DNA of 64,000 nt from Auanema rhodensis (lineage: Eukaryota > Animalia > Nematoda). This document shows positions 8,071 through 28,600 of the stretch, in pieces. Each line of letters opens with the position of its first letter. Position 1 is the stretch's first letter. The DNA is taken from contig OZ059895.1 in assembly GCA_964057225.1 (NCBI GenBank), positions 10,912,001-10,976,000 on the forward strand, written 5' to 3'. The notes under the pieces are model-generated. The model was not told where the DNA came from. It saw nothing but the letters and a program-made list of their open reading frames with translations, and did not search any database. Made by a program: the position numbers and the translations under genes.

Positions 8071-8117
8071 CATGCATTTTGATCCATGCGCAGGCTCGAG
8101 AGCCTGACTCGGGAGGA

Positions 8118-8225: not shown

Positions 8226-8269
8226 TTTGGGGGCGTGGTTAGTAAATTCGGCATGGCTCTCTACTGGGA

Positions 8270-9950
8270 TTCTCCGTACACAGAACACATAATTATGCAT
8301 TTACACAGAGAATGCATGCACCAAGGGCGAGATTTTGTTCTAACACTCTTGCGTCAAAAATACTTTTTAAGTAGACCATCAAGCATAGTCAGATCAGTTC
8401 TCAAAACATGCACAATCTGCAATAGATACAACGCTTTGCCGTTTGGAACGTCCTTAATGCCAGCATTGCCTAAGGATAGAGTAATTCTAACAAAACCATT
8501 CATGAGTACAGGTTGTGACTTATTAGGTCCAATAACCATAAAGGATGGTAAAAAGATATTTATATGTCTGTTTACTTGTTTAGCTATAAGAGCTATACAC
8601 CTAGAAATAGTTTTTGACCAATCAACAAAGGCATTCTTAAACGCTTTTGAAAGGTTCATTGGAAGAAGAGGTATTCCAGAAATAATACGAAGTGATAATG
8701 GAGGAAACTTCTTATTAAGTGTTAAAGTAATAGAGTTTTACACAGAAAACCATGAATCAAAAAATGAAAAAACATTAACCAATTATCTTGCCGAAAAGAA
8801 TATTAAATGGTACTTCAACACACCACAGGCTCCATGGAAAGGTGGAACATGGGAAAGACTAGTAGGACTAACAAAGTTAGCACTATACAAAACAATTGGA
8901 AATAAATTAATGTCATTTGATGATATACATACAGTAATTGTAAAAATCGAAACAATTTTAAATACTCGCCGCTTACACATCCGAACCCATCCAACCTGAA
9001 CATTTTGCCTATCAGACCTTGTGATTTTTTAAACCGTTACATCAGGTTTACACTTTTTTCAAACGTATCGAATACCCGAATTTATGATAAAACTATCAAT
9101 AGCAGGACAATACAAACTATAGAGCAAGCCATTGAAGCAATAGAGTTATCTAACGATGTAACTCAACTATTCTGGAAAAAATTCTATTCCGAGTATTTAA
9201 TTTATCTTAGAGATATTTACAAACACAACAGAAAACGACCTGCAACGAACGCTAAGAAACCACAAGAAGGAGAAGTTATTATAATACAGAATGATGATTC
9301 AAGTAGAGGTAAATGGAAATTAGGACGCATAATAGAACTGATAAAAAGTGCAGATGGGGAAGTTAGATCTGCAAAACTAATAACTGGCACTGGTCTTATA
9401 ACAACTCGTTCATTAAACCACATATATCCACTACAAGTGAAAAACGCAGAAACAGCACCGTTTGCGTCAGAACCTCACTCAATGAAATACAATAAAAAAT
9501 ACCAAGTGAATTCATTTTTAATCACCGGGACGGTAAAACAAAAAGGAAATCGGGTTGAAAATGTTGAAAATATTGAACACCTTGAAAACACTCAAGAAAG
9601 TGAACGAAATAACGATGTAATACCACTCGACATCTATACACCCAACATGAATATCATGAACGAAGCAGGAAACGAAAATAATTCTAATGATACGAACTTA
9701 GAGCAAGCGGAAGATCAAACAAATGAGATAACTCTTCAAACCAAAAACGAATCCACACTATCAAATCTGAATAGATGGTTCAAACAAAAACACAAGGTAG
9801 ACAAGCAGCTGTAAGAAGTTATTTTAAGAAAAATAAAATGAAAACGATTGTTCCAAAAGTAGCTTTTCTTGGAATAATTCCAACGGTTGAGGCTACATGC
9901 CAATCCTCTGAATTGCTAACAGCGGAAGCATTATATTTCCCTCAATGTAT
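8270..9950 (+). mobile_element. BEL/Pao (Belpaoviridae) LTR retrotransposon fragment: integrase plus C-terminal domain, disrupted
   Basis: HHCC (H..CMHQG..CTIC), PF..TGCDLLGP, IRSDNG.NF, PWKGG.WERLVG, and a DUF5641-like FWKKF..EYL..LR..WKLGRI....DGEVRSA block. Frame break at ~8999. Confidence 0.92.
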
Positions 9951-10002
9951 TTTTTGTTACGGAAGAGATAAAATTGAAAATCAGCTGTAAAAAAATTTGA
10001 AA

Positions 10003-10098
10003 AGCTTACGGCACCCGGGATTTCCAAGCCGTCTCCGATACAAGTACTAACCGGGCCTAACGTTGCTTGACTTGCCAGATCGGACGGGATGGCGTACT
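10003..10098 (-). pseudogene. 5S rRNA pseudogene, 5'-truncated
   Basis: Reverse complement of 5S nt ~24-119 with substitutions. Confidence 0.85.
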
Positions 10099-10262
10099 CT
10101 ACATTTTTCCGATACAAGATTGTAAATAATTTGCTACCTTCGGTTGAGCTATCTAAGTAAAACTGCTGGAAAATTGAAAACATTTGTTACGGAAGAGATA
10201 AAATTGAAAATCAGCTGCATGGCGTTCTTTCAACGTGGCATGATCGTTGAAAAAATTTGAAA

Positions 10263-10316
10263 AGCTTACGGCAACCGGGATTCCCAAGCCGTCTCCGATC
10301 CAAGTACTAACCGGGC
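10263..10316 (-). pseudogene. 5S rRNA 3' fragment at the inversion breakpoint
   Basis: Reverse complement of the last ~54 nt of 5S. Confidence 0.85.
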
Positions 10317-10681
10317 TGATTTTCAATTTTATCTCTTCCGTAACAAATGTTTTCAATTTTTACTTAGTCAGTTTTACTTAGATAGCTGAACCGAAGGCAG
10401 CAAATTATCTTCAATCTTATTCCTATATTACAGTTATAAACCCGTAGTTAATGAACCTTTATCTTAACTTTACTGTTTCTATCTATTTCCTATTGTAACA
10501 AACATTGCTTAAACACTATACAACTGTGAAACCTTTTTTAATTTATTGTATTTGGAGCTCATAAGATTTGATATCATCGAGGAATTTCGATGGAACGTGG
10601 AAAATTACATAACTAACATGAAATAGGAAAAAAAACATTAACGAGGAAAAGTATGCAAATCATTGAATATCAGATATTTTC

Positions 10682-10800
10682 GCTTACGACCATACCACGT
10701 TGAAAGTACGCCATCCCGTCCGATCTGGCAAGTCAAGCAACGTTGGGCCCGGTTAGTACTTGGATCGGAGACGGCTTGTGAATCCCGGGTGCCATAAGCT
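10682..10800 (+). rRNA. 5S rRNA (variant, 2 substitutions)
   Basis: 119 nt GCTTACGACCATACCACG...TAAGCT followed by an oligo-T terminator; nematode-type sequence. Confidence 0.92.
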
Positions 10801-11211
10801 TTTTAAATTTTTTTAACGATCCTACCACGTTGAAAGTACGCCATGCAGCTGATTTTCAATTTTATCTCTTCCGTAACAAATGTTTTCAATTTTCCAGCAG
10901 TTTTACTTAGATAGTTCAACCCAAGGCATCAAAATATCTTCAATCTTATTTCTATATTACAGTTATAACCCAGTAGTTTATGAACCTTCATCTTAACTTT
11001 ACTGTTTCTATCTATTTCCTATTGAAACAAACATTGTTTAAACACTATACAACTGTGAAACCTTTTTTAATTTATTGTATTTGAAGTTCATAAGATTTGA
11101 TATCATCGAGGGATTTAGATGGAAAGTGGAAAATTACATAACTAACATGAAATTGGAAAAAAAAACAATAACGAGAATAAGTGTGTAAATCATTGAATAT
11201 CAGATATTTTC

Positions 11212-11330
11212 GCTTACGACCATACCACGTTGAAAGTACGCCATCCCGTCCGATCTGGCAAGTCAAGCAACGTTGGGCCCGGTTAGTACTTGGATCGGAG
11301 ACGGCTTGGGAATCCCGGGTGCCGTAAGCT
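11212..11330 (+). rRNA. 5S rRNA (consensus copy)
   Basis: 119 nt with complementary ends (GCTTACG/CGTAAGC), intact internal control region and T-run terminator. Confidence 0.96.
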
Positions 11331-11741
11331 TTTCAAATTTTTCGTAAGATCATGCCACGTTGAAAGAACGCCATGCGGCTGATTTTCAATTTTATCTCTT
11401 CCGTAACAAATGTTTTCAATTTTCCAGCAGTTTTACTTAGATAGTTCAACCCAAGGCATCAAAATATCTCCAATCTTATTTCTATATCACAGTTATAACC
11501 CAGTAGTTTATGAACCTTCATCTTAACTTTACTGTTTCTATCTTTTTCCTATTGAAACAAACATTGTTTAAACACTATACAACTGTGAAACCTTTTTCAA
11601 TTTATTGTATTTGGAGCTCATAAGATTTGATATCATCGAGGAATTTCGATGGAACGTGGAAAATTACATAACTAACATGAAATTGGAAAAAAAAACAATA
11701 ACGAGAATAAGTATGTAAATCATTGAATATCAGATATTTTT

Positions 11742-11860
11742 GCTTACGACCATACCACGTTGAAAGTACGCCATCCCGTCCGATCTGGCAAGTCAAGCAA
11801 CGTTGGGCCCGGTTAGTACTTGGATCGGAGACGGCTTGGGAATCCCGGGTGCCGTAAGCT
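11742..11860 (+). rRNA. 5S rRNA (consensus copy)
   Basis: Identical to 11212-11330. Confidence 0.96.
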
Positions 11861-11871
11861 TTTCAAATTTT

Positions 11872-11990
11872 CTTAACGACCATACCACGTTGAAAGAACG
11901 CCATCCCGTCTGATCTGGCAAGTCTAGCAACGTTGGGCCCGGTTAGTACTTGGATCGGAGACGGCTTGGGAATCCCGGGTGCCGTAAGCT
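11872..11990 (+). rRNA. 5S rRNA variant or pseudogene, second member of a head-to-tail dimer (130-bp period)
   Basis: Altered 5' end (cttaacgac), 3 internal substitutions, no upstream spacer. Confidence 0.8.
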
Positions 11991-12371
11991 TTTCAAATTT
12001 TTTTACAGCTGATTTTCATTTTTATCTCTTCCGTAACAAATGTTTTCAGTTTTCCAGCAGTTTTACTTAGATAGCTCAACCCAAGGCATCAAAATATCTT
12101 CAATCTTATTCCTATATTACAGTTATGAACCAGTAGTTTATGAACCTTCATCTTAACTTTACTGTTTCTATCTATTTCCTATTGAAACAAACATTGTTTA
12201 AACACTATACAACTGTGAAACCTTTTTTAATTTATTGTATTTGGAGTTCATAAGATTTGATATCATCGAGGGATTTAGATGGAAAGTGGAAAATTACATA
12301 ACTAACATGAAATTGAAAAAAAAAACAATAACGAGAATAAGTGTGTAAATCATTGAATATCAGATATTTTT

Positions 12372-12490
12372 GCTCACGACCATACCACGTTGAAAGTACG
12401 CCATCCCGTCCGATCTGGCAAGTCAAGCAACGTTGGGCCCGGTTACTACTTGGATCGGAGACGGCTTGGGAATCCCGGTTGCCGTAAGCT
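12372..12490 (+). rRNA. 5S rRNA variant (3 substitutions)
   Basis: 119-nt match to the consensus copy. Confidence 0.88.
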
Positions 12491-12836
12491 TTTCAAATTT
12501 TTTTAACGATCATTCCACGTTGAAAGAACGCCATGCAGCTGATTTTCAATATTATCTCTTTCGTAACAAATGTTTTCAATTTTCCAGCAGTTTTACTTAG
12601 ATAGTTCAACCGAAGGCAGCAAATTATCTTCAATCTCATTCCTATATTACAGTTATAAACTAGTAGTTTATGAACCTTTATCTTAACTTTACTGTTTCTA
12701 TCTATTTCGTATTGTAACAAACATTGTTTAAACACTATACAACTGTGAAACCTTTTTTAATTTATTGTATTTGGAGCTCATAAGATTTGATATTATCGAA
12801 GGATTTAGATGGAACGTGGAAAATTACATAACTAAC

Positions 12837-13249
12837 CGTTCCATGGTAGTTCCCCAGGGTTCCGGCTGGCTAACCACATGGAATTATTTTCTTTTTTTCG
12901 AAATATAAATGATAAAGAGTATAGAGAGAAAGGTTTATTCATGATAAAGTATACAAATTACAATAATAAAAGTTACATAATGATTCCTAGTCGCAGCCCA
13001 AAGGACTCGTAAGGAAACCTTATATAGTTTTCCTTACGAGCATAAAAAGTGGTTATATCAGGTCCGCGGAACTTGGTTCCGCTTGAATTGGGCTTTCTTT
13101 AATTAAACTTAATATGAAAAAGTGTTCGTTCATTATTGCATTGAATTCCTGTTTCTCAAATGTAGCGTCAGCTATTTGTTTTTATAATATTCCATTTTAT
13201 ACGCGATTGACGTTGTCAATCGCTCTACTTATAGGACACGTATGGAACA
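12837..13249 (-). repeat. 3' LTR (413 bp)
   Basis: Direct repeat of 23150-23543 (~6 substitutions and one 19-bp indel by eye). Minus-strand ends are TGTTCCAT...ATGGAACG. Confidence 0.96.
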
Positions 13250-13451
13250 TGCCTAATATCGAAAAAGTAGCTGACCTCAGCTACATCGAGAAAGTGAAAT
13301 TCCATGCAAATGTGAAAGTTGTATGAAATGTTTTAAAAAATAAAAGAATACTGATAATACAGAATAATTTTATGAGAAAAAAATAAAAGAAAACAATGTA
13401 AATACAAAATAATATATCATACATCATACTGGGAATCTTTCAAAAGTTGTT

Positions 13452-14052
13452 TTAGTCTTCTTCATAATACTGGTGTATCTCTGGTAATGGTGATGATCCT
13501 AGGTCGTGGAGAAGATCCATAGTCTTGTTGCATAAATCCGTTTTTCTTTCCATTTCTTCTTGAGTGGTTGCTGGTGATGCCAGAAATATTTGTAGAGCAT
13601 TTATAATGCTTTTTCTTGCCTCTGTGGATGGCAGTTCGCTGCAATATTGCAGGCTCCATTCTTGGTAGGCCAATTGGGTCTCGGCAATAATCCAGTTTGG
13701 TGTCTGCTGTTTGTGAATCGCAACTAGGTGAATAACCTAGTTGGTCCCTTAGTTCAGCAATGGCATCTCGGATGACTCCTGCTATGCTGACCCATGGTCC
13801 TATGCAGTGATCAACTTCCGATAGTCGATCCTTGTCGTATTGGTAACATAGGATTTTGAGCGTTTCAGTACTAGTATTCGCTCTTGTTAGTCCTTGAACT
13901 AACTCCTTCAGGATCTTCTCTTTCCTGGGGCGGTTGGCGATGGTATTGGCGCCTAGCTGCTTCAATTCTCTTACTAATAGTTGAATTGAAAGCCATCTCT
14001 TTTTGGCCATCATGAGGGGAATTTCGACGGCTTCAGGAAATTGGGTGGACAT
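13452..14052 (-). CDS. Accessory ORF of unknown function between pol and the 3' LTR (probably one ~200-aa helical protein split by a frameshift near 13680)
   Basis: ORF 13462-14052 and overlapping ORF 13452-13673, sense to the element, no recognisable motif. Confidence 0.55.
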
Positions 14053-14451
14053 TGTTATCTTTGTTACTGTTTTTCTGTCCTTTTATTCTTTTAAAACTAG
14101 GTCGGTCTGTTCCTTCCTTTTTTGTCGCCTCCTTTTTGACCAGTTAGGTGAAAAAGTGATGAAGATTGTTAATTGAAACTTTGCAGTGATTTTTGAAAGA
14201 TTCCAAGTATGACTGTTGTACTGTTGGTGCCACGAAGTTTGGGTCCGGGATCTGACTCTTCGAAACTCTCTTCTTCGGCTCTGTTACTGGTATGGTGCTG
14301 TGATACCTTAACGGCACATGATAAGGCTTTGCTGGCGTTGTAGGAAAATTATCTTCTAATCCCAATGCCAATTTAAGTGCTGAACTCCATTTCTTAATTG
14401 TGGGTGGCTCCTTCTTTCGTTCCTCATACAATTCTTCCCTTGCGTTTTCTT

Positions 14452-15900
14452 CTATTTCCTCTGATAGTTTTTGAAAAGCCTTGATCGTCTGGTTTTGTTC
14501 TCTAGACTCTGTTGTTGACGTTTCTTCTGTGCGTCCTGATTTGGACTGATTTGTGAACTTTCCGCAAGTTCTATGTCTGTTTCCAAAGTATTTTCGTTGA
14601 TATTTGTTGTCGACGGGCTGTTTCGTGTAAATGGTTGTTCGTTTTGATAGAACGTTTCTTCTTCACTGTCCGAATCAGATAAATGAGTTCTGATCATCAG
14701 TGTAATTTCTGCCGTTGGGTTGTCATCCGGAGGGAAAAATCTGATATTATTTTTGTGAGCCTTCATCGTTTTTCCTTCACTATCTGCTAACGTAACGTTA
14801 TTTCCAATTATCTTCTTGATGATATATGGTCCATCGCTCGTCTTTTGCAATTTGTTCGTTGGTTTTGTTCGTTTGACCAATGCCCTATCGTCTACGTAGA
14901 TCTCTCTTTCTTCCGTTCTGTGTTTCTCGTCATATTTCTTTTTCATCCTTTCATTACTTAATTCAATACTTTTCTGAATCTTCTCATGTAGATCTGGGGT
15001 GTTCTTGATTGTGGCTTATGGTGTTTCTAGGGTCTTATCCATTGGTAAACGAGCTGTTTGTCTAAATAGACAATCGTAGGGTGGTGTGCGAGTTGTGGCG
15101 TTTGGTAGTCGATTGATCGTAAAGACAATTTTGGGTAAAATACTGTCCCAATTATCTTGATCGGCATTAACGTAAGAAGTTAATGCTTCTTCCAGCGTTC
15201 TATGTAGTCGTTCTATTTGACCATTTGCGTTCTTGTAGTATGGCATAGTAGTGTGATGTTCCGATTTAAAATTATCGCACATGCTTTTGAATTCGTGTGA
15301 GACAAAGTTTGATCCATTGTCTGTGATGATTTTCTTTGGGGGTCCGAAGACATAGAATAAGTGTGTCATAATAGCTGATACTAATTCTTCTGATGTCTGA
15401 CGAATTAATGGTATCGCTATAATCCATTTGGAAAATGCGTCCTGTATAGATAAAATGTATCTATTATCCTTTGCAGTTCTAGGTAATGGTCCTAGTATGT
15501 CCATGTGAACTCGTTCTCATGGATGTGTCACTGTTGGGAAGTTTCTCATTGGTTCGACTGTGGCTTCATGTGGGTTATTTTTCCTCTTTGCACAGTCGAG
15601 ACATCTGTTCACATTTCTTGTGATATCATCCTGTATTCCTGTCCAAGTGTACCGTCGCAAAATGGAGTCTTGAGTCTTATTGATTCCAAGATGTGCTCCG
15701 AGAATGGGGTCTTTGTGGAATTTCTCAATAATTGGTGTGGTAATTGATGAGTCACTTGGCAGAATAGCTCGTGGAGTTTGTAGAGCTGATTTGGGTTCAG
15801 CGTATAGAACATCATTCAAAACAATGTATCTATCCGTTATTTGTGTCCCAGCATTGTTATTTGACAGCTTCTCCTTAGTTTCTTTGATCCATTCTGTGTC
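14452..15900 (-). pseudogene. Gypsy integrase (HHCC, DDE core, GPY/F module, long hydrophilic tail)
   Basis: H.....AHLG..C.DC; MDILGP..QDAFSK..ITDNGSNF..NGQIERLH; DGPYIIKK. Confidence 0.95.
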
Positions 15901-15999
15901 GTTTTGAATGGTCCTTAGGTCCGTTACAGTTGAGATTGTCGAAACTTGATGAGATGTTGTCTTTATTGTCGGCTTCTTTTTCCTTTCTTTTGCTTCGTT

Positions 16000-17330
16000 A
16001 ATTTCGTCCTCAAAGTACCTTGATAAAGCGTCGCAAACGCTATTAAGGCGTCCTGGGCGATAGATAATTTCAATGTCATACTCTTGGAGTACTATTTGAA
16101 ATTTGGCTAATCTTCCAATAAGATCTTTTCTTGTCATAAGACTGGTTAAAGGTCTATGATCGGTAATAATTTTGATCGGTGCCCCTAGGATGTAGGTACG
16201 AAATTGGTGAACCGCAAAAGTTAGAGCTAAGGCTTCAATCTCAATGGGGGGATAGTTCCTTTCTGCTCTGTTCAGTTTACGGCTAGCGAAAGCTATTGGG
16301 TGCAGTGGTTCTCGATCGTCCGCGGATTGCAATAAAACTGCTCCTACTGCAATAATGCTTCCGTCGCTTTCGACTACATATGGCCGTTTTGCTCTAGGCG
16401 CTTGGAGAACTGGTGCTTCACAAAGTGCTTTCTTTAGGTGTTGAAAAGATTTTTCTTCTTTGTCTCCCCATGTGAAGGTTTTATCCTTTTTTGTGAGGTC
16501 ATAAAGCCATAAAGCGGTGATGCAATGCCTGCGGCATTTCTAATGAATCTCCGAGTAGTTTACAACTCCCATGAATGCTCGAACTCCTGTGATTGATTTT
16601 GGTCTTGGATAATCTTGGATTGCTTTTACTTTTTGAGGGTCTGGTTTCATTCCTTCGTGTCCAACAATGAATCCTAGGAATTTGACTTCTTGTTGTCCAA
16701 AGGTACATTTCTTAAGCTTGATTTTTAATCCTAGCTCTGCTGATGCGTTCAGTACTTCGTCGATATCTTGTAAATGTTTCGTCGTTGATTCCGATATGAG
16801 AAGTAGATCGTCGAGATAGACAAAAAGCTTGCATCGTACGTGTTGTTGTAAATATCGTACAGCATTTTGGAATGTGTGTGGAGCTCCGCAGAGTCCCATC
16901 GGCATTCTGCAGTATTGATAAGTTCCGCTCGTAGTAGTGAATGCGGTGAGGTGTCTATCTTCTGATCTAAGAGGGATTTGAAAGAATCCAGATACTAGAT
17001 CAAAGTTACTGAAGATAGGTGCTCCGGCTGCTAGGTCCAAGATGTCTTGAATGTTAGATATAACGTAGATTTGTTTTTGCGTTATTGCGTTGAGTGCTCG
17101 AAAATCAGTCACAAATCTGTTATTCCTTGTTCTAACATTTCCTCCACTTGTTTTTCTACTTCTTCTTGTTGTGATAGAGGTATTCTGTACGTGATCTTGA
17201 AAGATGGAACTTTTCCTTCGATGATCGGGATGCTATGTTCAACTGGTCCTCTGAAAAGACCGATATTTCGATCCTCGTTCAAGAAAGCTTCCTTATTTCT
17301 AAGTACTATTTCCTTTAATTGTTGTCTTTC
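16000..17330 (-). pseudogene. Gypsy reverse transcriptase and RNase H
   Basis: DFRALN, DLVSGFFQI, TAF.T..G.YQY.RMPMGL, YLDD; RH motifs PIAFASRKL..AERNY..IE.EALA..TDHRPL. About 20 codons appear deleted near 17115. Confidence 0.96.
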
Positions 17331-17770
17331 TAATTGAGTGAAGATGGAATTTGAGACATCTAGATCTTTTATGAAATCATCTGGGAAGAATGGTAGTTGA
17401 TCTTCCCATCTTGCTTCTGGTGGTACATATTGTCCTTTTTGCTCTTCCGTGTTTTTGGGGATAGCATAAGCTGTTTCAATGCCTTGGTTTGCCTGGACTT
17501 CGATTGTATCCGAAGAGATATTTGTAGCAAATATCTGGACTCCATATCCTGTTGGGGTGAAAGTTGTAGGCGCAAAACTCATTTTTCCTGCTCGTTGTGA
17601 GCTTCTAATGAAAGCTTGTTCGAATGAGGCGGATTCATTTACTTCCAAAGTTAGAGATCTTGTTTCTCCGGGGTAAAATTGTTTAGTTTCCAGACTAACA
17701 ACTTGTGTAATTGTGTGTTTTTCTGTTCATGCATTATAGTTTTAAGCTAGAGGTACCGTGGTATCTCCAA

Positions 17771-18125
17771 TCAGCAATGAATTTTGCAGAGGGCGTAAGG
17801 AGGTGAGGATTCCTTCTCTGTTGAGTGCTTCAAAAAATCTATTCCAAGCAATATTGGTGCTGGGCAATGATTGTCAGAAGATATCAATATTTTGTGGTCA
17901 ATTTCGGTCTTTCCAATTATTATTGACAGTCTTGTATATCCTAGGAAGGAAAATCGAGACTTGTTTGCTACAACAGCTGTAGTTTTCTCAGCTACCATTT
18001 TTGCTGCCGGTAATTGATTGAAAGTGCTCTCTTTCATATATGAAATTGATGCACCTGTATCCCATAATGCAGTAAAAACTTGGTTGTAAATTGATATGGG
18101 TAGGAATGGTAATCGGGATCCCCCA
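17771..18125 (-). CDS. Retropepsin aspartic protease (C-terminal part of the 528-aa Env-PR ORF 17771-19357)
   Basis: ALWDTGASISYM (DTG at 18053-18061) and ILLGIDFL. Confidence 0.93.
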
Positions 18126-18346
18126 ATGTAGTTTATCTTTGATTCTTTAATAGCGTACCTGGGCAGATAGGTTAGCAGATCGCTATCTGTTAATGGTGCA
18201 TCGGGATCATAGCGTGAAAGTGGAGCATGGTAGTTGTCTTGTGTCGCTCTTCTTAACGGCAGAAGTTCGGTCTCTTGGGCTGGATGTTCTCTTCTTTCTT
18301 CGTCATCTTCTTCAATATAATTGATGGGAATTCTTGTGACACGTGC

Positions 18347-21198
18347 GTATATTTTGATTCCGTAAATCAGCGCGGTGATGAGTCGTATCATCACGATGAT
18401 TGCGCCGATTGTGGCATGTGTTCTTAATAGCCAGGCCTTGAAAGTTTCTCCAATAAAAGCGAAGAAGCTGGAAATCCCTTCGTTTGCCGTGTTTCGGACG
18501 ATGTCTCCCACTACGATAGGAATTGTTATGGCATTTTCAAGGATGTTGAGTGGATTCAGACTGATTCCTTTCTTGTTGTTAAATATAGGTTTCAATCTTT
18601 CTGGCAAAGTGGCTTGTAGAGAGGCTAGACTGGATCCGTATGAAATAGCGAGTTCAAACAGGAATGAAGATTCCGTGAGGTTGGCATATATGTTGGAGTT
18701 GTTGAATTTTATGTGATCAATTTTGATCGACGTGAGTTCGTCCGCAAATGATAGGTTCGTCACATTTAATTTTGTGTTTTCCTTCATCCATTGGTCGTCT
18801 AATTTATATGGATCCGTTGTAGCCATCATGCAGTCGATTCGTCTGCCCATTGGTGAAATATCACGTGTTCCAGGTATTAAAAACAGTTCTCCATGATGTT
18901 CTGTATCTACTGGTGTTTCCATGTAACATGTTCCGTTTCTTTTGTGATCCGAGTAGATTTTTGTTACGTGGATAGGTGTGCAAGGCATTACGTAGATAAG
19001 GTGTTCAGCAACGAATTTAGCTGATATATCCTGACGTCTAAGCATTGTGCGGATACCAATAGTTGGGTTGATTTGCAGAATGGCCCACCACGTAAGGAGT
19101 TGTTTGTTTTGCATCCTACAGATGTCCTTTTTCGTTTTTTGAAACGCCTTTAAAATTTGTTCTTCTAGTTGCGAGGTTGAATATTGTAGATGGGATTGTG
19201 TATCCAGTTGACGTAATTGTTCATCATATTTCTGGATGATATCATGTCTTGTACGAAGAAAATTAGCGTGTGCTTGCTGTCCTATGTGAGATTGGACTTC
19301 TCTTGCTTGTTGAGGTGTTGTGGCGGCTCGTTTGGTTGTTGTCCTTGGCTCTATCACTGTTGAAGAGATTTGCGGAATTTCTGTTCGCGTTACAAGCTGT
19401 TTTGGTAAAGAAAATGGCGTTGTTGTAGCTTCATAGTAGTGATATCTTCTTGGAGTGGTTGTAGAGCTTGGTGATAATGTTCTGGGAGTGTGGAAAGGTT
19501 TGGGAGTAATTCGAAAAGTTGTTGTTGTAGTCGCGTGCGTAGTAGAGCTTGTAGTGCTTGCGGAAGTCGTGGTAGTCGTAGTCGTTGTTGTTGAATACGT
19601 GAGGGAGTCGATTAATTCAAGATATTTCTGTTGAAATCTCTCGCTTTCTTCCTGTGAAATAGTTTTAGTCGTTGGTGTACCACGTGGCAGTCCAAAGTTC
19701 TAAACTAGTCCTTTAAAGATGATTGCGTAATTAGGAAAAATAATCCTTGGACTACTTGATTCCTCTTCAAATGTATTTCACTTTCTGCTCTCTTTTTCGC
19801 GTTCTTCTGTTGATATATGTAGCAGACGATTATGTGATGCTATATAGTCAATGAAGTTTAATACTTCGTCGATTTGTGTGTAAAACAAAGTGTCCATTCT
19901 AGGAGTTGTTCTTCTCGACATCCTAGGTGGGTTTAGTTTTAAATATATATTCTTCTAATGAAGGAATTGTTTCTCCTGTTGCTAATACTGCGGGAGTTTG
20001 TGCGATTTCAAATGCAATGTCTCTCGCTCGCTGTAAGTAGTCTCCTGTGCGTTTTTCCAACTTATCGGCGAACTCCTTAATCGTGATTTGTTTACTGAGT
20101 TTTTCTGTGAGCTCAGATGGTAGGAGATGCGCGATAGCAATTTCTGTTGCTAGGAGAATTTCTGCTTTAGCCAGCGCATGTAGAATGGCGATATTAGTGT
20201 CGTTGTAGTTGTACCATAATAGTGTTTCCTTGATCGCGATTGCGTCTAACTTGAGGAATTTTGTATGTCCTATGTGAGTACTGGAAGTTTTCAGATAGTC
20301 TATGAGACTGTAAGAATTATCCAATCTTTTCCGGTTGCGATACTTCTGATACATTGGAATAATTCCTGTAGAGCTGTCCGTAAGACGTAATGATGGATAT
20401 ATGGCGATATTGAAAAAGCGTGTAGGGTATTCTTGTGGCGCTTTCCTTTTCTGTCGTCTTGGAGTCTCTTTAGGTGGTATATGAATGTATGTACCACTAT
20501 TCGTTGCATGTATATCCTTTCCTAAACATCGAGTTGCTATGTTAACCGTTTTCTGTTTTTCCTAAGGAGCTGAAGTCGCATTCGTGATGGTCGTGAGGTG
20601 GTGTCCAAACGATTATGGCATTGTGCGTTGTACAAGTTCCTGCTTTCTTTGCACATCCTTCCGTGTTGAGAAAAAGGTCTGATATGATGATATCGTCATG
20701 TAAACAAGTCATCATTCCTCTTTCTAACGTTAATCTTGGAGTTGTGGTGCAAGCTGTAGACCAAAATGAGTAAGACTGATTGTTTAAAGGTAAAGGTGCC
20801 TTAAATAGTCCTGGAGCTGTACGTACAAGATTCGTATCCATATGTCTTCTTTCTTGTATAGCTTTCTTACATTCCTTAAGAGTTGCGGCTTCGACGTAAA
20901 GTAGAGTGATATTGTTTTCTCTAATGAACAGTCTATCGTGAGCACATGTTCTGTAGATTTCTTTGGAGCATTTCCAAGTCTCCCATTCCTTGTAATGCAT
21001 GTTTTCTGCGAATTATTCGACGTTAGTAATTTGAACTCCATCCTTGTGTATATTTTCTGAGCATAAAGTTGGCCGAGGGGGTTCGAGAAAGATGCCTCCT
21101 CGTGTTCCGGTGCATAGATGGTAGGTGTTGTCTGCGTGACAAGGAAGTATTGTCAGTGCCATGATGGAAAGGAAGAGAGGTGTGAATAGAAGTTTCTT
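18347..21198 (-). pseudogene. Envelope glycoprotein, class III fusogen-like (herpes gB / mononegaviral G type), with signal peptide, mucin-like tract and TM
   Basis: Signal peptide KKLLFTPLFLSIMALTILPCHA (21198-21133); Cys-rich ectodomain; gB domain III-like block DICRMQNKQLLTWWAILQINPT..RRQDISAKF..VMPCTPI (19126-18971); N-x-S/T sequons; TM ~18412-18347. Confidence 0.85.
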
Positions 21199-21199
21199 G

Positions 21200-22770
21200 T
21201 TGCTCGTGCGGGGTAATTCATTGTTAACTTGGTTAACATGGAATCGTACTGATGGGCTTCTTGTGCGATTTCTGTAGCGCGAATTAGGTCCATATGATTC
21301 ATGGTGATCTCTGTTCTGGTATCTTCAATCGTACTGGTTTCCGCGATGACAGTTGTTGTTGTATCTGTTATCATAACGGTCGTTATACCTATTATTTCTG
21401 TGTGGGCTACGGTAGTTGTTTGGTCCTCTTGAGCGTGGTCTGTTATTTCTGTTCCTGTCGTTGTAGTGATCGTATCTTCCTGTTCTTCTTTCATCGTTAT
21501 GACGGTATCCTCCTCGTCTTTGGTGCCATGGTTCTTGAGGTCTTTGTGGATGTGAGGAATTGTCGTGTGGCCTGGATGATAGATGTGGTGCCGGTCCTCT
21601 ATGAATTTTATCACGCTGTGGAACTCTCATGTGATTGATGTGCTCGTTATTGATATTCAAATCATCTAGTTCATCGGTTAAGTTGTTGATGAAGGAAGAG
21701 GGGTCCTCATCTGCTTCAACGGTTTCAGCGATAGTGATGGCTGATTCAAAGGTGGTTGGGCTTCGATTATTGACGTGCGTACGTAGTTGTTTGTAATCCA
21801 CCGAGGAAAGCTACACGTAATATACGTTCATCAGCATCGGTGTTCATATCGCTTGCTTCATAAGCCAGATTTCGACAGCGTTGTGCAAAATGGTTGACAG
21901 TTTCACTCTCTCCTTGCTTCATGTGAGTGAGTCTGGTGAACGCGGCATCTCGTTTCTCTTGAGGTTGAAGTTTGAGAGACAAAATGCGCTTTACGTTATT
22001 CCATCCTTGACGTATTTCGTCCGGAGTTATGCAACGTAAAGCATCGGCTGCTTTGTCCGTCCCCAACAATAGATTGAGGTGCGACAGACGCTTAGCCATG
22101 GGTACTTGCAACGCGTCAAAATAACCTTCCAATCTCGTCATGTAGAGGTTAAAAGGTACTGCTCCATCATACAAGGTGGGTTTATGGTGGCGAATAGAAA
22201 CAGTGTTCGTAGGTAGCATGCGGAAATTAGAGTTGTTTTGGGTTTGATCATTGGAGTTTGGGTGGTCATCCATCCGGTCAGTCATCTGAGCGATTTTTCT
22301 CTTCTCTGCAACATTCAAATTGAAATTGGTGGTTACTTCCGACGGAGAAGATACAAGAGAAGAAGATTGCCCATGTAATGATTGATCGGATGAAGAGGGA
22401 GAATTTCGAGGAAGAGGAGAAGAAAGAATAACAGTATTTGGGTATGAATATAATATTTGTGAATAATCTTTACGAGGGGAAGTATTTGTGCTAACATTAC
22501 TAGAGCTTTTGATAACATTAGAAGTGCGTTTTGGAGTTTGTTTGCTAATAGACGCTTTAATTTTACTAAGAGTAATAGCGTGGCGAGAAGTTTTAATAGC
22601 TGTTGTGCCTATTTTCTTTGCGGGGGTACCCGGTATAGCGGGTGGTTTCTTTGCAGCAGTAGATCGGCGCTTCGTGTCCGGCTCATAAACATTTGGAGGT
22701 CCTCTTTTTCTTTGATTCCGCTCGAGTACTGGCTCGACGTGCGTATCATTGCGCTCTGTGGATTCGTTTT
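21200..22770 (-). pseudogene. Gag (basic S/T/K-rich N-terminus, capsid domain, R/N/Y/D-rich NC-like tail without a zinc knuckle)
   Basis: P.LYDG..F..Y..R.E.YF and MKQGESETVNHFAQR (MHR-like). Frameshift ~21790, stop at 21325. Confidence 0.85.
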
Positions 22771-23130
22771 ATCCTGCGGAGGATTTTTACTCTTCGAGTC
22801 AGCGTGACGCTTACTGAATGAAAGATCTCAGAACAAAAATATGAATCCAAATCAAACGATGTTTCTTTTAAATGAATGAATATAAAATTTCAAAATTAAG
22901 TTGTTTCAAAGTATATTTTTTTAAATAAATGTATATAAGATTTCAGTATTAATTTATGAATCAAAATCAAAATAAAGTTCTTTGAATGAATGAAATAAAG
23001 AAAAGAAAGATTTCAAATTGAATTCATATAGCATAATCGAAAAATAATTCTTTAATTAGATGTATGAAAGACAACAAAATAAAATTTATGTAGCGAAATA
23101 TGGTTCTTAGAGATTCGTTGGTTATAGACG

Positions 23131-23149
23131 AATCTCGGTGGAACCTCCA
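23131..23149 (-). promoter_or_regulatory. Primer binding site complementary to the tRNA-Gln 3' end
   Basis: Minus strand TGGAGGTTCCACCGAGATT immediately follows the 5' LTR. The + strand AATCTCGGTGGAACCTCCA equals the metazoan tRNA-Gln 3' end including CCA. Confidence 0.88.
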
Positions 23150-23543
23150 CGTTCCATGGTGGTTCCCCAGGGTTCCGGCTGGCTAACCACATGGAATTAT
23201 TTTCTTTTCTTCCAAATATAAATGATAAAGAGTATAGAGAGAAAGGTTTATTCATGATAAAGTATACAAATTACAATAATAAAAGTTACATAATGATTCC
23301 TAGTCGCAGCCCAAAGGACTCGTAAGGAAACCTTATATAGTTTTCCTTACGAGCATAAAAAGTGGTTATATCAGGTCCGCGGAACTTGGTTCCGCTTGAA
23401 TTGGGCTTTCTTTCATTAAACTTAATATGAAAAAGTGTTCGTTCATTATTGCATTGAATTCCTGTTTCTCAAATGTAGCATCAGCTATTTGTTTTTATAA
23501 TATTCCGTTTTATAAGCTCTACTTATAGGACACGTATGGAACA
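23150..23543 (-). repeat. 5' LTR (394 bp)
   Basis: Direct repeat of 12837-13249, adjacent to the PBS. Confidence 0.96.
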
Positions 23544-23612
23544 TAACATGAAATTGGAAAAAAAAACAATAACGAGAATAAGTATGTAAATCATTGAATA
23601 TCAGATATTTTC

Positions 23613-23731
23613 GCTTACGACCATACCACGTTGAAAGTACGCCATCCCGTCCGATCTGGCAAGTCAAGCAACGTTGGGCCCGGTAAGTACTTGGATTGGA
23701 GACGGCTTGGGAATCCCGGGTGCCGTAAGCT
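23613..23731 (+). rRNA. 5S rRNA variant (2 substitutions)
   Basis: 119-nt match starting 69 bp from the proviral end. Confidence 0.9.
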
Positions 23732-24140
23732 TTTCAAATTTTTTTAACGACCATACCACGTTGAAAGAACGCCATGCAGCTGATTTTCAATTTCATCTCT
23801 TCCGTAACAAATGTTTTCAATTTTCTAGCAGTTTTACTTAGATAGCTCAACCCAAGGCATCAAAATATCTTCAATCTTATTTCTATATTACAGTTATAAA
23901 CCAGTAGTTTATGAACCTTTATCTTAACTTAACTGTTTTTATCTATTTCCTATTGTAACAAACATTGTTTAAACACTATACAACTTTGAAAAATTTTTTA
24001 ATTTATTGTATTTGGAGCACATAAGATTTGATATCATCAAGGGAACCAGATGGAACGTGGAAAATTACATAACTAACATGAAATTGGAAAAAAACTATAA
24101 CGAGGATAAGTATGTAAATCATTGATAATCAGATATTTTC

Positions 24141-24259
24141 GCTTAAAACCATACCACGTTGAAAGTACGCCATCCCGTCCGATCTGGCAAGTCAAGCAAC
24201 GTTGGGCCCGGTTAGTACTTGGATCGGAGACGGCTTGGGAATCCCGGGTGCCGTAAGCT
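24141..24259 (+). rRNA. 5S rRNA variant (5' stem mutated: gcttaaaacc)
   Basis: 119-nt match. Confidence 0.85.
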
Positions 24260-24277
24260 TTTCAAATTTTTTTAATC

Positions 24278-24396
24278 GCTTACGACCATACCACGTTGAA
24301 AGTACGCCATCCCGTCCGATCTGGCAAGTCAAGTAACGTTGGGCCCGGTTAGTACTTGGATCGGAGACGGCTTGGGAATCCCGGGTGCCGTAAGCT
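24278..24396 (+). rRNA. 5S rRNA, second member of a head-to-tail dimer (137-bp period); last full copy in the window
   Basis: 119-nt match with 1 substitution. Confidence 0.88.
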
Positions 24397-24409
24397 TTTC
24401 AAATTTTTT

Positions 24410-25615
24410 TAACGACCATACCACGTTGAAAGAACGCCATGCAGCTGATTTTCAATTTCATCTTTTTTGTAACAAATGTTTTTAATTTTCCAGCAGTTTT
24501 ACTTAGATAGCTCAACCGAAGCCAGCAAATTATCTTCAATCTTTTTTCTATATTACAGTTATAAACCAGTAGTTAATGAACCTTCATCTTAACTTTACTG
24601 TTTCTATCTTTTTCCTATCGAAACAAACATTGTTTAAACACTATACAACTCTGAAACCTTTTTTAATTTGTTGTATTTGGAGCACATAAGATTTGATATC
24701 ATCAAAGGAACCAGATGGAACGTGGAAAATTACATAACTAACATGAAATTGGAAAAAAACTATAACGAGGATAAGTATGTAAATCATTGAATATCAGATA
24801 ATTTGCTTACAACTATACCACGTTAAAAGTACGCCATGCAGCTGATTTTCAATTTTATCTCTTTTGTAACAAATGTTTTCAATTTTCCAGCAGTTTTACT
24901 TAGATAGCTCAACCGAAGCCAGCAAATTATCTTCAATCTTATTTCTAAAATACAGTTATAAACCAGTAGTTAATGAACCTTCATCTTAACTTTACTGTTT
25001 CTATCTTTTTCCTATCGAAACAAACATTGTTTAAACACTATACAACTGTGAAACCTTTTTTAATTTGTTGTATTTGGAGCACATAAGATTTGATATCATC
25101 AAGGGAACCAGATGGAATGTGGAAAATTACATAACTAACATGAAATTGGAAAAAAACTAAAACGAGGATAAGTATGTGAATCATTGATATTCAGATATTT
25201 TTGCTTACAACTATACCACGTTGAAAGTACGCCATGCAGCTGATTTTCAATTTTATCTCTTCCGTAACAAATGTTTTCACTTTTCAAGTCGTTTCACTTA
25301 GATAGCTCAACCCAAAGCAGCAAATTATTTTCAATCTTATTTCTAAAATACAGTTATAAACCAGTAGTTAATGAACCTTCATCTTAACTTTACTGTTTCT
25401 ATCTTTTTCCTATCGAAACAAACATTGTTTAAACACTATACAACTGTGAAACCATTTTTAATTTGTTGTATTTGAAGCACATAAGATTTGATATCATCAA
25501 GGGAACCAGATGGAACGTGGAAAATTACATAACTAACATGAAATTGGAAAAAAACTATAACGAGGATAAGTATGTAATTCATTGAATATCAGTTATTTTG
25601 GCTTAAACTATACCA
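24410..25615 (+). repeat. 5S-derived ~398-bp satellite, ~3 monomers in 5S-sense orientation
   Basis: 5S spacer plus only the first ~33 nt of 5S (24805, 25203) joined directly to gcagctgatttt. Confidence 0.93.
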
Positions 25616-25625
25616 ACTTTCTTTT

Positions 25626-28600
25626 TATAGTGTTTAAACAATGTTTGTTTCGATAGGAAATAGATAGAAACAGTAAAGTTGAGATGAAGGTTCATTAATT
25701 ACTGGTTTATAACTGTATTATAGAAATAAGATTGAAGATAACTTGCTGCCTTGGTTTGAGCTATCTAAGTGAAACGACTTGAAAAGTGAAAACATTTATT
25801 ACGGAAGAGATAAAATTGAAAATCAGCTGCATGGCGTACTTTCAACGTGGTATAGTTGTAAGCAAAAATATCTGATATTCAATGATTTACATACTTATCC
25901 TCGTTATAGTTTTTTTTCCAATTTCATGTTAGTTATGTAATTTTCCACGTTCCATCTGGTTCCTTCGATGATATCAAATCTTATGTGCTCCAAATACAAT
26001 AAATTAAAAAAGGTTTCACAGTTGTATAGTGTTTTAACAATGTTTGTTTCGATAGGAAATAGATAGAAACAGTAAAGTTGAGATGAAGGTTCATTAATTA
26101 CTGGTTTATAACTGTATTATAGAAATAAGATTGAAGATAACTTGCTGCCTTGGTTTGAGCTATCTAAGTGAAACGACTTGAAAAGTGAAAACATTTATTA
26201 CGGAAGAGATAAAATTGAAAATCAGCTGCATGGCGTACTTTCAACGTGGTATAGTTGTAAGCAAAAATATCTGATATTCAATGATTTACATACTTATCCT
26301 CGTTATAGTTTTTTTTCCAATTTCATGTTAGTTATGTAATTTTCCACGTTCCATCTGGTTCCTTCGATGATATCAAATCTTATGTGCTCCAAATACAATA
26401 AATTAAAAAAGGTTTCACAGTTGTATAAAGTTTTAACAATGTTTGTTTCGATAGGAAATAGATAGAAACAGTAAAGTTGAGATGAAGGTTCATTAATTAC
26501 TGGTTTATAACTGTAATATACGAATAAGATTGAAGATAATTTTCTGCCTTGGGTTGAGCTATCTAAGTGAAACGACTTGAAAAGTGAAAACATTTATTAC
26601 GGAAGAGATAAAATTGAAAATCAGCTGCATGGCGTACTTTGAACGTGGTATAGTTGTAAGCGAAAATATCTGGTATTCAATGATTTACATACTTATCCTC
26701 GTTATAGTATTTTTCCAATTTTATGTTAGTTATGTAATTTTCCACGTTGCATCTGGTTCCCTCGATGATATCAAATCTTATGTGCTCCAAATACAATAAT
26801 TTAAAAAAGGTTTCAAAGTTGTATAGTGTTTAAACAATGTTTGTTTCGATAGGAAAAAGATAGAAACAGTAAAGTTAAGATGAAGGTTCATTAATTACTG
26901 GTTTATAACTGTAATATACGAATAAGATTGAAGATAATTTTCTGCCTTGGGTTGAGCTATCTAAGTGAAACGACTTGAAAAGTGAAAACATTTATTACAA
27001 AAGAGTTAAAATCGAAAATCAGCGGCATGGCGTACTTTCAACGTGGTATGGTCCTAAGCGAAAATATCTGATATTCAATGATTGACATACTTATCCTCGT
27101 TATAGTTTTTTTTCCAATTTTATGTTAGTTATGTAATTTTCCACGTTCCATCTGGTTCCTTCGATGATATCAAATCTTATGTGCTCCAAATACAATAAAT
27201 TAAAAAAGGTTTCACAGTTGTATAAAGTTTTAACAATGTTTGTTTCGATAGGAAATAGATAGAAACAGTAAAGTTGAGATGAAGGTTCATTAATTACTGG
27301 TTTATAACTGTAATATACGAATAAGATTGAAGATAATTTTCTGCCTTGGGTTGAGCTATCTAAGTGAAACGACTTGAAAAGTGAAAACATTTATTACGGA
27401 AGAGATAAAATTGAAAATCAGCTGCATGGCGTACTTTGAACGTGGTATAGTTGTAAGCGAAAATATCTGGTATTCAATGATTTACATACTTATCCTCGTT
27501 ATAGTATTTTTCCAATTTTATGTTAGTTATGTAATTTTCCACGTTCCATCTGGTTCCTTCGATGATATCAAATCTTATGTGCTCCAAATACAATAAATTA
27601 AAAAAAGTTTCACAGTTGTATAAAGTTTTAACAATGTTTGTTTCGATAGGAAATAGATAGAAACAGTAAAGTTGAGATGAAGGTTCATTAATTACTGGTT
27701 TATAACTGTAATATACGAATAAGATTGAAGATAATTTTCTGCCTTGGGTTGAGCTATCTAAGTGAAACGACTTGAAAAGTGAAAACATTTATTACGGAAG
27801 AGATAAAATTGAAAATCAGCTGCATGGCGTGCTTTCAACGTGGTATAGTTGTAAGCGAAAATATCTGATATTCAATGATTAACATACTTATCCTCGTTAT
27901 AGTTTTTTTTCCAATTTTATGTTAGTTATGTAATTTTCCACGTTCCATCTGGTTCCTTCGATGATATCAAATCTTATGTGCTCCAAATACAATAAATTAA
28001 AAAAGGTTTCACAGTTGTATAAAGTTTTAACAATGTTTGTTTCGATAGGAAATAGATAGAAACAGTAAAGTTGAGATGAAGGTTCATTAATTACTGGTTT
28101 ATAACTGTAATATACGAATAAGATTGAAGATAATTTTCTGCCTTGGGTTGAGCTATCTAAGTGAAACGACTTGAAAAGTGAAAACATTTATTACGGAAGA
28201 GATAAAATTGAAAATCAGCTGCATGGCGTACTTTGAACGTGGTATAGTTGTAAGCGAAAATATCTGGTATTCAATGATTTACATACTTATCCTCGTTATA
28301 GTATTTTTCCAATTTTATGTTAGTTATGTAATTTTCCACGTTCCATCTGGTTCCTTCGATGATATCAAATCTTATGTGCTCCAAATACAATAAATTAAAA
28401 AAGGTTTCACAGTTGTATAAAGTTTCAACAATGTTTGTTTCGATAGGAAATAGATAGAAACAGTAAAGTTGAGATGAAGGTTCATTAATTACTGGTTTAT
28501 AACTGTAATATACGAATAAGATTGAAGATAATTTTCTGCCTTGGGTTGAGCTATCTAAGTGAAACGACTTGAAAAGTGAAAACATTTATTACAAAAGAGT

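Follow-up and report, generated by a model that had tools for sequence, protein, structure and literature searches.

A 398-bp satellite of probable 5S rDNA descent beside its parental genes

Satellites derived from 5S rDNA are already known outside nematodes. The preliminary description of the present locus said so correctly; cases are documented in fish, frogs, a plant and hagfish. For nematodes, our literature searches gave no report of a 5S rDNA-derived satellite. One close analogue is the 5SHindIII-DNA of the fish Hoplias malabaricus. According to the account of Martins et al. 2006 given in PMC2713275, its 360-bp unit combines a truncated 5S gene segment with an NTS-like segment; in the same account it is thought to stem from duplicated 5S rDNA and to have been amplified far beyond the genes. 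The stretch of DNA analysed here, a window of 64 kb, likewise contains a tandem satellite of truncated 5S plus spacer. The fish unit, however, is described there as retaining 95 bp of the gene, the present one 33 nt (PMC2713275). Also, the fish satellite is reported in that account to be centromeric on many chromosomes, away from the 5S loci, whereas the present array abuts a 5S cluster and units sharing its junction are visible (PMC2713275).

PcP190 of hyloid frogs is another 5S rDNA-derived satellite, long-lived and diversified into subfamilies. In its unit, 120 bp resembling the entire transcribed 5S are retained along with a hypervariable region, whereas here the gene body is gone (PMC11675491, PMC4201667). 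The 5S satellite of the B chromosome of Plantago lagopus and the plant satellites from rDNA-IGS share with our case the use of rDNA repeats as a seed (Kumke et al. 2016, as cited in PMC12692304). They belong, however, to another kingdom and have another unit structure, and adjacent parental units are not shown in what PMC12692304 relates of them. The hagfish Eptatretus burgeri has a tandem repeat with a partial 5S, EEEb3, with a unit of 379-438 bp, which is germline-restricted and removed by chromosome elimination. In contrast to the present unit, the remainder of which is 5S spacer, EEEb3 is a mosaic with SINE2 and a GTA microsatellite (PMC9734144). Finally, the rhabditine Auanema rhodense eliminates germline-restricted DNA made up of tandem arrays with a unit length of 167-504 nt, which also includes 5S rRNA arrays; a link of these blocks to a 5S satellite is not described there (bioRxiv 10.64898/2026.08.27.747507).

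Rfam detects eight full-length 5S genes in the 64-kb window, all on the plus strand and with 90-107 bits against a gathering score of 38. They start at 10682, 11212, 11742, 11872, 12372, 23613, 24141 and 24278, which bears out both the positions and the number (about eight) given before. Runs of T, i.e., terminators, follow each of them; the second copy of the first dimer is without a native 5' end. Four types of junction had been proposed, and all four are indeed present by inspection and alignment. In type a, the terminator leads directly into the spacer starting with CAGCTG; this is seen after 11990 and again in a minus-strand copy at 10003-10119. Type b is a head-to-tail 5S dimer. The first one (11742-11990, plus strand, with genes at 11742 and 11872; 107.5 and 89.7 bits) has a period of 130 bp according to TRF and belongs to a 630-bp unit; in its second copy (11872-11990), which bears T27A, the 5S sequence begins at nt 5 behind TTA, and the type-a junction comes next. 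The second dimer (24141-24396, plus strand, with genes at 24141 and 24278) has a period of 137 bp (TRF) and a junction unlike that of the first: the terminator is joined to TC and a complete second 5S copy, after which a type-c junction follows.

Type c is made up of the terminator, a 29-nt copy of 5S nt 5-33, a G and the spacer; it occurs after 10800, 11330, 12490, 23731 and 24396, and once inverted at 10204-10250. The plus-strand gene at 10682-10800 (100.6 bits, two private substitutions), for instance, has its duplicate, a pseudo-5' end, at 10816-10844, followed by G and CAGCTG; further plus-strand duplicates lie at 11346-11374, 12506-12534, 23747-23775 and 24412-24440. The gene at 11212-11330 (plus strand, 107.5 bits) equals the consensus and heads a 530-bp unit. 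Those at 12372-12490 and 23613-23731 (both plus strand) carry three and two private substitutions, respectively, and the spacer of the former is broken off at 12836. In type d, 5S nt 1-33 is joined via G to the spacer; examples are the monomers at 24805 and 25203 and every one of the 94 heads in the large array.

The gene cluster is a rearranged, weakly homogenised edge or remnant and no pristine ancestor. Alignment reveals one to four private substitutions in six of the eight genes, the gene units measure 527, 530, 533, 630 and 664 bp, and the spacers diverge by 2.5-9.9%. A functional, concertedly evolving 5S array was considered: full-length genes with a terminator are in agreement with it, but private substitutions, varied units, an LTR insertion and inverted fragments are at variance with homogeneity. 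The left edge, as revealed by blastn with the 530-bp unit, consists of inverted 5S and spacer debris (9953-10316, minus strand). Spacer nt 1-33 lies at 9953-9985, and 5S nt 24-119, together with its terminator and a type-a junction, at 9991-10119; an inverted type c at 10116-10316 is composed of 5S nt 66-119, its terminator, the 29-nt 5' duplicate and spacer nt 1-100. The degraded minus-strand 5S copy therein, at 10003-10119, reaches 52.5 bits in Rfam. The first plus-strand spacer core (10314-10681) meets the inverted fragment head-to-head at about 10315. An LTR retroelement of 10.7 kb (12837-23540, minus strand) sits inside a 5S spacer and splits the cluster. Its LTRs (about 12837-13250 and 23150-23540; TAAC target duplication) differ by 7 mismatches and one indel in blastn, and its minus strand contains gag, protease, RT, RNase H and integrase by Pfam, split over many ORFs. 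The linked 5S-SL1 repeat of many nematodes was also considered; the 22-nt SL1 is nowhere matched in the window, even with 3 mismatches allowed, and at E ≤ 1 the unit shows no Rfam family apart from 5S.

The satellite monomer of 398 bp comprises 5S nt 1-33, one G and a 364-bp 5S spacer, the latter accounting for 91% of the unit. Two full monomers (24805-25202 and 25203-25600, plus strand) plus a 15-nt truncated head, up to 25615, are co-oriented with the genes; the main array (25623-64000, minus strand) contains 95 full and 2 partial monomers of 397-400 bp. The tandem repeat thus seen covers at least 39 kb, and the array continues past the right end of the window. For 24418-25615 TRF arrives at 3.0 copies and for 25626-64000 at 96.3, the period being 397-399 bp. 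Every monomer has a 33-nt head matching 5S nt 1-33, the consensus of which differs from the gene at 2 positions; as this match recurs in each of about 100 monomers, chance is no issue. G-CAGCTG follows the head in all 94 cases of the inverted array and in both plus-strand monomers. Between the 364-bp core and the spacer of the full-gene unit at 11212, identity amounts to 88-92%. The junction GCCAT-G-CAGCTG, identical in the five type-c units and the inverted one when aligned, is shared by the satellite monomers.

The monomer is devoid of 5S nt 34-119 and of the terminator. Type-1 Pol III promoters have three internal elements, A box, intermediate element and C box, and with 5S nt 34-119 these are missing, too. 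The loss of all three and of the terminator had been claimed before and is borne out here. In 25623-64000, Rfam yields no 5S hit at the gathering score, and in 26200-27500 none even at E ≤ 1.

Monomers diverge by 6.6% on average and by 11.6% at most, so that the satellite is not young; its diversity comes close to the 8-9% by which genes and satellite are split. Within this array, 25864-29847 and 29848-33831 are 99.9% identical (3984 bp, 4 mismatches), and 53762-58159 and 58146-62543 are exact duplicates (4398 bp); these blocks span 10 and 11 monomers. Mean identity by lag is flat, 0.93-0.95 over lags 1-24. A higher-order-repeat satellite was rejected for lack of a uniform multi-monomer period, there being solely local duplications at lags of 7, 9, 10, 11 monomers and longer. 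Nor is this a 5S-derived SINE or a Cassandra-type retroelement: the copies are strictly tandem with nothing between them, and have neither poly(A) nor LTR structure.

Very probably, the 398-bp satellite descends from a 5S rDNA unit of this nematode-like genome by one deletion, followed by amplification, inversion and continuing exchange with the gene array. The derivation from a 5S rDNA unit, as already proposed in the preliminary description, is secure: the truncated 5S 5' end is present in all monomers, and their junction is that of the type-c units. A tandem array, a 5S-coding segment, homology to the spacer and a unit that is not a gene are all found, as expected of a 5S rDNA-derived satellite. 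The single origin and the direction of the process are suggested not by a rooted tree but by the logic that no universal gene can come from a piece of itself. One illegitimate deletion would have joined 5S nt 33, via the single G, to the first spacer base (GCCAT-G-CAGCTG), thereby taking out 5S nt 34-119 and the terminator. What results is a unit that retains the spacer in full, along with the gene's upstream region and its first 33 transcribed bases; an internal Pol III control region is missing from it, and transcription by Pol III has probably been lost. The extra G may be filler or a later substitution. Multiplication was presumably achieved by unequal crossing-over, likely still ongoing in view of the identical blocks of 10 and 11 monomers, and most of the array would have been inverted later relative to the genes.

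What sets type c apart from type d is precisely the 130-bp offset of two homologous 29-nt segments, and an unequal homologous exchange of 130 bp between the 5S 5' end and its 29-nt duplicate would convert one into the other. The right-hand type-c unit is 527 bp long, and 527 - 130 = 397. The offset is 130 bp, in line with the roughly 130 bp put forward earlier, and not about 132 bp. With T27A in the duplicate and the dimer copy and T27 in most heads, an exchange between two type-c units would need a crossover in the last 6 nt or a later conversion. Exchange between cluster and array has probably continued and produced a gradient of spacer types. At 24 columns, the spacers at 10848, 11378, 12008, 12538, 23779, 24444, 24841 and 25239 show, in this order, 16, 14, 14, 12, 8, 5, 4 and 0 differences from the satellite consensus, falling towards the array; the far-left spacer at 10315, with 10 differences, is off the trend.

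The order of the steps is not readable from this window. The coexisting forms are interconvertible by recombination and, therefore, their coexistence does not reveal any order. The preliminary description had lined them up from a to d. Spelled out, a 130-bp tandem duplication would turn a into b, a deletion in the second copy would yield the 527-533-bp type c, and the exchange would yield the 398-bp type d, with 24805-25615 as surviving first products. This series is quite conceivable, if short of probable. Type c, the commonest gene unit, is found in each half of the cluster as well as in the old remnant that is inverted, and offers ample substrate for exchange between type-c units. T27A, common to the second copy of the first dimer and five of the six duplicates, fits a step from b to c; the spacer after the 24278 gene groups with the first monomer (SH-aLRT 95), and the spacer types are graded towards the array. 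Satellite heads, however, mostly have T27 instead of A27. Also, 24410-25615 had been predicted to be basal, yet the derived head CAACTATACC is found already in both plus-strand monomers, the second of which has a wholly satellite-type spacer, while four monomers deep in the inverted array retain the ancestral head GACCATACC. That satellite diversity comes near the gene-satellite split does not favour the series either. The expected satellite clade nested in type c finds no firm support: the tree is unrooted and weakly resolved, none of the three groupings that were tried fails an AU test (p 0.26-0.53), and the genealogy is blurred by pervasive recombination, with all four gametes at 38% of informative site pairs.

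The monomer may also have come first, a possibility to be entertained tentatively. A deletion of about 103 nt in a type-a unit would then have created d, and type c would have arisen later from the second copy of b and a d head at the gene/satellite border, to spread in the gene cluster thereafter. Two illegitimate joins and one homologous exchange are needed either way; type c could equally well have arisen through recombination between a dimer and a monomer already in existence, and the order a, b, c, d is not established. T27 in the heads is then accounted for without special pleading, and in the type-c unit closest to the array (24278) the spacer is almost of satellite type, which is expected of b recombining with d. 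That such exchanges happen is evident from the mosaic spacer at 23779, which follows the 23613 gene and is of gene-cluster type in its 5' half and of satellite type in its 3' half. The type-c spacers of the left cluster, however, are unlike the satellite, and the duplicates have diverged at 2-4 of 29 nt, which makes type c old and widespread here; type a, moreover, is left in two places, one of them a fragment.

The repeats from 24805 onward had been taken for one co-oriented array. In fact, they lie on the opposite strand from 25623, and about two monomers (24805-25615) follow the orientation of the genes. Sequence and blast coordinates place a non-homologous inversion junction at 25616-25624: the plus side ends at about nt 15 of a 5S head, about 9 nt of filler follow, and the inverted array sets in at about spacer nt 205. 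Head-to-head junctions number three within 16 kb, and an exact duplicate and one with 4 mismatches within so diverged an array might raise the suspicion that inversions and identical blocks stem from chimeric long reads or mis-assembled satellite. We consider such a partial artefact very improbable. The inversion arms are about 5% diverged and asymmetric, hence no fold-back artefact, and the filler, too, is unlike a fold-back chimera; the junction types recur across several diverged copies, and the retroelement insertion has a clean target duplication. The notion of intermediates preserved in place loses force in view of the inversion, of a cluster that is rearranged and invaded by a retroelement, and of a satellite that is not young.

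The array might be a germline-restricted satellite of a rhabditine nematode with programmed DNA elimination, born from an eliminated 5S cluster. We rate this as improbable. If true, the window would capture the place where an eliminated array of non-coding-RNA genes meets the satellite that sprang from it, short transcripts or small RNAs might come from the start site and upstream region of 5S kept in each monomer, and the origin of eliminated repeats would be tied to Pol III gene arrays. The four published FISH probes of Auanema rhodense have no match in the window at up to 6 mismatches (bioRxiv 10.64898/2026.08.27.747507). A telomere repeat is absent from the window. A protein of the window has its sole named relative, at 65%, in Auanema sp. 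JU1783.

How far the case matters more widely depends on its copy number, its position on the chromosomes, a restriction to the germline and the situation in sister species. As a rule, nematode chromosomes are holocentric. The present locus is also a reminder that an "intermediate series" is of limited use as a time series. The route of satellite formation is a known one, here seen beside the parent genes. The earlier cases in fish, frogs, a plant and hagfish were for the most part inferred by FISH and from monomers that had been cloned. In the present window, one contiguous sequence contains the derived array together with its parental genes and units sharing the breakpoint and, in consequence, the events can be read at base resolution: the deletion junction, the 130-bp exchange between 29-nt repeats, the block duplications and the inversion.

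The derivation of the 398-bp satellite from a 5S rDNA unit, as proposed in the preliminary description, is sound. Every monomer contains a truncated 5S sequence contiguous with the sequence found upstream of the real genes. Since it is a universal, conserved gene that is truncated here, the satellite must descend from the 5S unit and not the reverse. The four types of junction already described are all real, as judged by sequence reading and by a junction alignment. In type a the terminator TTTTCAAATTTTTTTA runs straight into a spacer starting with CAGCTG (after 11990, and again in a degraded minus-strand copy). Type b comprises head-to-tail dimers, at 11742/11872, where the second copy starts from 5S nt 5, and at 24141/24278, where the junction is a different one and the second copy is complete. 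In type c the terminator is followed by a 29-nt duplicate of 5S nt 5-33, a G and then the spacer (after 10800, 11330, 12490, 23731 and 24396, plus an inverted case at 10204-10250). Type d, the satellite monomer, has 5S nt 1-33, a G and then the spacer; it is seen at 24805, at 25203 and in every one of the 94 heads, i.e., 5S-derived monomer starts, that were extracted from the large array.

The monomer thus adds up to 33 + 1 + 364 = 398 bp, of which the 364-bp core shares 88-92% identity with the spacer of the full genes. The monomer is missing 5S nt 34-119 as well as the terminator and has no Rfam match, even at E ≤ 1. By the standard layout of a type-1 Pol III promoter, the deletion takes in the A box, the intermediate element and the C box, and the claim that the monomer is devoid of these elements and of the terminator therefore holds. 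Among 62 distinct monomers, variation is lowest at monomer positions 31-60, i.e., the deletion junction and the start of the spacer, and at 356-385, which precedes the 5S start by about 15-45 nt and contains TATGTAAAT; a column permutation yielded P ~0.09 and ~0.07, respectively, which does not demonstrate constraint. Conserved boxes in the monomer are a weak lead. No further Rfam family was found in the 5S unit or in the monomer, and SL1 is not present in the 5S spacer.

The gene cluster next to the satellite is not a clean gene array; it is weakly homogenised, rearranged and surrounded by mobile-element debris. According to Rfam, the window contains eight full-length 5S rRNA genes, all on the plus strand and scoring 90-107 bits, where the gathering score is 38. 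Their starts are at 10682, 11212, 11742, 11872, 12372, 23613, 24141 and 24278; the degraded minus-strand copy occupies 10003-10119. According to the junction alignment, just two of the eight match the consensus exactly and the other six have 1-4 private substitutions. The aligned units measure 527, 530, 533, 630 and 664 bp, and Tandem Repeats Finder picks up two short 5S dimers, one with a 130-bp and one with a 137-bp period. At the left edge of the cluster (9953-10316), inverted pieces of 5S and spacer contain the second type-a junction and the inverted type-c junction. The 5S sequence presumably resembles that of rhabditid nematodes, which may serve as a lead. Neither ordinary host genes nor telomere repeats were found in the window.

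That types c and d are related through recombination is equally well founded. The illegitimate join GCCAT-G-CAGCTG is identical in type-c units and monomers, and this identity of sequence argues for one single origin of the join. The proposed exchange that converts a 530-bp unit into a 398-bp monomer works arithmetically (527 - 130 = 397), although the numbers were slightly off, the offset between the 5S 5' end and its duplicate being 130 bp. The order of events is another matter. The forms are defined by two illegitimate joins: one of the terminator to 5S nt 5, amounting to a 130-bp tandem duplication, and one of 5S nt 33 to the spacer. Given both, the forms interconvert via homologous exchange in the 29-33-nt repeat, d arising from c x c, c from b x d, and b from c x a. 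The stepwise order a, b, c, d, as originally envisaged, would take two illegitimate events and one homologous event. The same number, however, suffices if type a gave rise to the monomer directly and to the dimer independently, type c then being formed from b x d. The stepwise order is therefore not established, nor is the idea that its intermediates are preserved in place. Position 27 of the 5S sequence leaves the choice between the two routes undecided. The second copy of the dimer has A here, as do five of the six duplicates, but T prevails in the satellite heads. Whichever route was taken, the crossover must have fallen within the last six bases, or conversion must have followed later.

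Phylogeny could not settle the issue either. A maximum-likelihood tree of 103 spacer cores was built without an outgroup and is unrooted; 30 of its 63 inner branches have less than 80% support. The sole relevant supported pair consists of the spacer after the gene at 24278 and the first monomer (SH-aLRT 95). AU tests did not reject any of three groupings, all six gene-linked spacers as one clade (p 0.26), five of the six (p 0.53) and the three boundary units (p 0.26). The predicted topology, with the satellite monomers as one clade nested within type c, is thus neither confirmed nor refuted by this unrooted tree. The further expectation that the units at 24410-25615 are basal is not borne out. 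Both monomers on the plus strand have the derived head CAACTATACC, as do 90 of 94 inverted monomers, and the second of them has a fully satellite-type spacer; the ancestral GACCATACC is retained by four monomers within the inverted array.

Recombination is pervasive among the spacers, all four gametes being present in 38% of the informative site pairs. The spacer at 23779-24139 is a clean mosaic, with a 5' half of the gene-cluster type (up to alignment column 181) and a 3' half of the satellite type (from column 244). The mosaic testifies directly to exchange between the two types of repeat. In a comparison of 24 columns, in which the two host-spacer flanks of a retroelement (see below) were kept as separate, unjoined rows, the differences from the satellite consensus decrease toward the array: 16 in the spacer at 10848, 14 at 11378, 14 at 12008, 12 at 12538, 8 at 23779, 5 at 24444, 4 at 24841 and 0 at 25239. 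The far-left spacer at 10315, with 10 differences, is an exception. The gradient fits an origin at the border and, equally well, a distance-dependent exchange between two adjoining arrays. Some of the "gene-type" states, e.g., GCATCAAAATATC versus GCAGCAAATTATC, are limited to a subset of the gene-linked spacers and were probably derived there, not in the satellite.

Tandem Repeats Finder counts 3.0 copies of the 397-399-bp repeat at 24418-25615 and 96.3 at 25626-64000. Just two full monomers plus a stub of 15 nt (24805-25615) share the orientation of the genes, a point that had escaped the preliminary description; the whole stretch 25623-64000 is on the minus strand. The two orientations meet at 25616-25624, where head nt ~15 passes, through about 9 nt of filler, into an inverted monomer at spacer nt ~205; the junction is non-homologous. 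A fold-back artefact of the assembly at 25616 is unlikely, since the arms are asymmetric and differ by about 5%. In pairwise comparison, monomers diverge by 6.6% on average and 11.6% at most, and a difference of 8-9% separates the gene-linked spacers from the satellite, which is therefore old and diversified rather than newborn. Amplification in the array appears to be still going on. A 3984-bp block of 10 monomers (within 25864-33831) is duplicated with 4 mismatches (99.9% identity), and a 4398-bp stretch of 11 monomers (within 53762-62543) has an exact duplicate. These block duplications are very recent, due either to ongoing unequal crossing-over or to an assembly effect. A uniform higher-order period across the array was not found, and a uniform higher-order repeat is accordingly rejected.

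The gap in the gene cluster, likewise overlooked before, is filled by an LTR retroelement that sits in a 5S spacer (12837-23540) and is flanked by a TAAC target duplication. Its frames for gag, protease, RT, RNase H and integrase are on the minus strand and broken. The LTR pair shows 7 mismatches and one indel, i.e., ~1.8% at aligned bases; the element was therefore inserted after the spacers had diverged. At 17771-19357 (minus strand) it contains an ORF of 528 aa, of which residues 53-200 match viral fusion glycoproteins: Monjiviricetes_fusion (E 8e-17) and, below the cut-off, the herpesvirus gB ectodomain. The retroviral protease (residues 417-511) is located downstream of this stretch. For an envelope-like domain, a place between gag and protease is odd; a nested insertion or some rearrangement may account for it. 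Between 14000 and 22000 the plus strand has a strongly negative AT skew (-0.19 to -0.33) and a positive GC skew; the region coincides with the body of the retroelement, and the pattern would fit a coding strand, here the minus strand, that is rich in A.

Further debris lies to the left of the cluster. Two ORFs at 8235-9814 (plus strand), with an integrase zinc-binding domain, an integrase core and DUF5641, stop just before the inverted 5S pieces; they are the remnant of another LTR retroelement, whose domain set points to the Bel/Pao type. Small tandem repeats are found at 7532-7612 (41 bp x 2.0, 100% identity) and 8117-8225 (30 bp x 3.7). A 2705-bp unit at 1-5975 is repeated in at least 2.2 tandem copies with 99.9% identity and extends leftward beyond the window. 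No sequence match in Pfam, PHROGs or PDB was obtained for its 411-aa ORF (1221-2456 and 3926-5161, minus strand), whose relatives are 48-70% identical, one from Auanema sp. JU1783 at 65%. An AlphaFold model of modest quality (pLDDT 57) matches double-jelly-roll major capsid proteins, those of giant viruses and virophages as well as a Cotesia bracovirus protein (E 1.5e-13). The neighbouring ORF at 255-671 (plus strand) shows a weak likeness to adenovirus protease, below the Pfam cut-off. The unit looks like a tandemly amplified fragment of a Maverick/Polinton-like element.

In a 2026 preprint on Auanema rhodense (bioRxiv 10.64898/2026.08.27.747507), the eliminated germline DNA is described as tandem-repeat arrays with units of 167-504 nt plus 5S arrays. 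The four published FISH probes of Auanema rhodense do not match anywhere in the window, and a link of the satellite to programmed DNA elimination therefore stays a hypothesis. When relatives were sought elsewhere, a metagenome scan with the 21-nt junction yielded three contigs of 56-61% G+C, taken as bacterial; they match over 21-24 nt only, which is attributed to chance. A nematode example of a 5S-derived satellite was not found in the literature searched. Analogues are known from other organisms: PcP190 of frogs, a 5S-derived satellite on the B chromosome of Plantago lagopus and, in hagfish, the germline-restricted repeat EEEb3 with its partial 5S sequence. The closest one is the 5SHindIII satellite of Hoplias malabaricus, whose 360-bp unit is composed of 95 bp resembling the 5S gene and 265 bp resembling its spacer.
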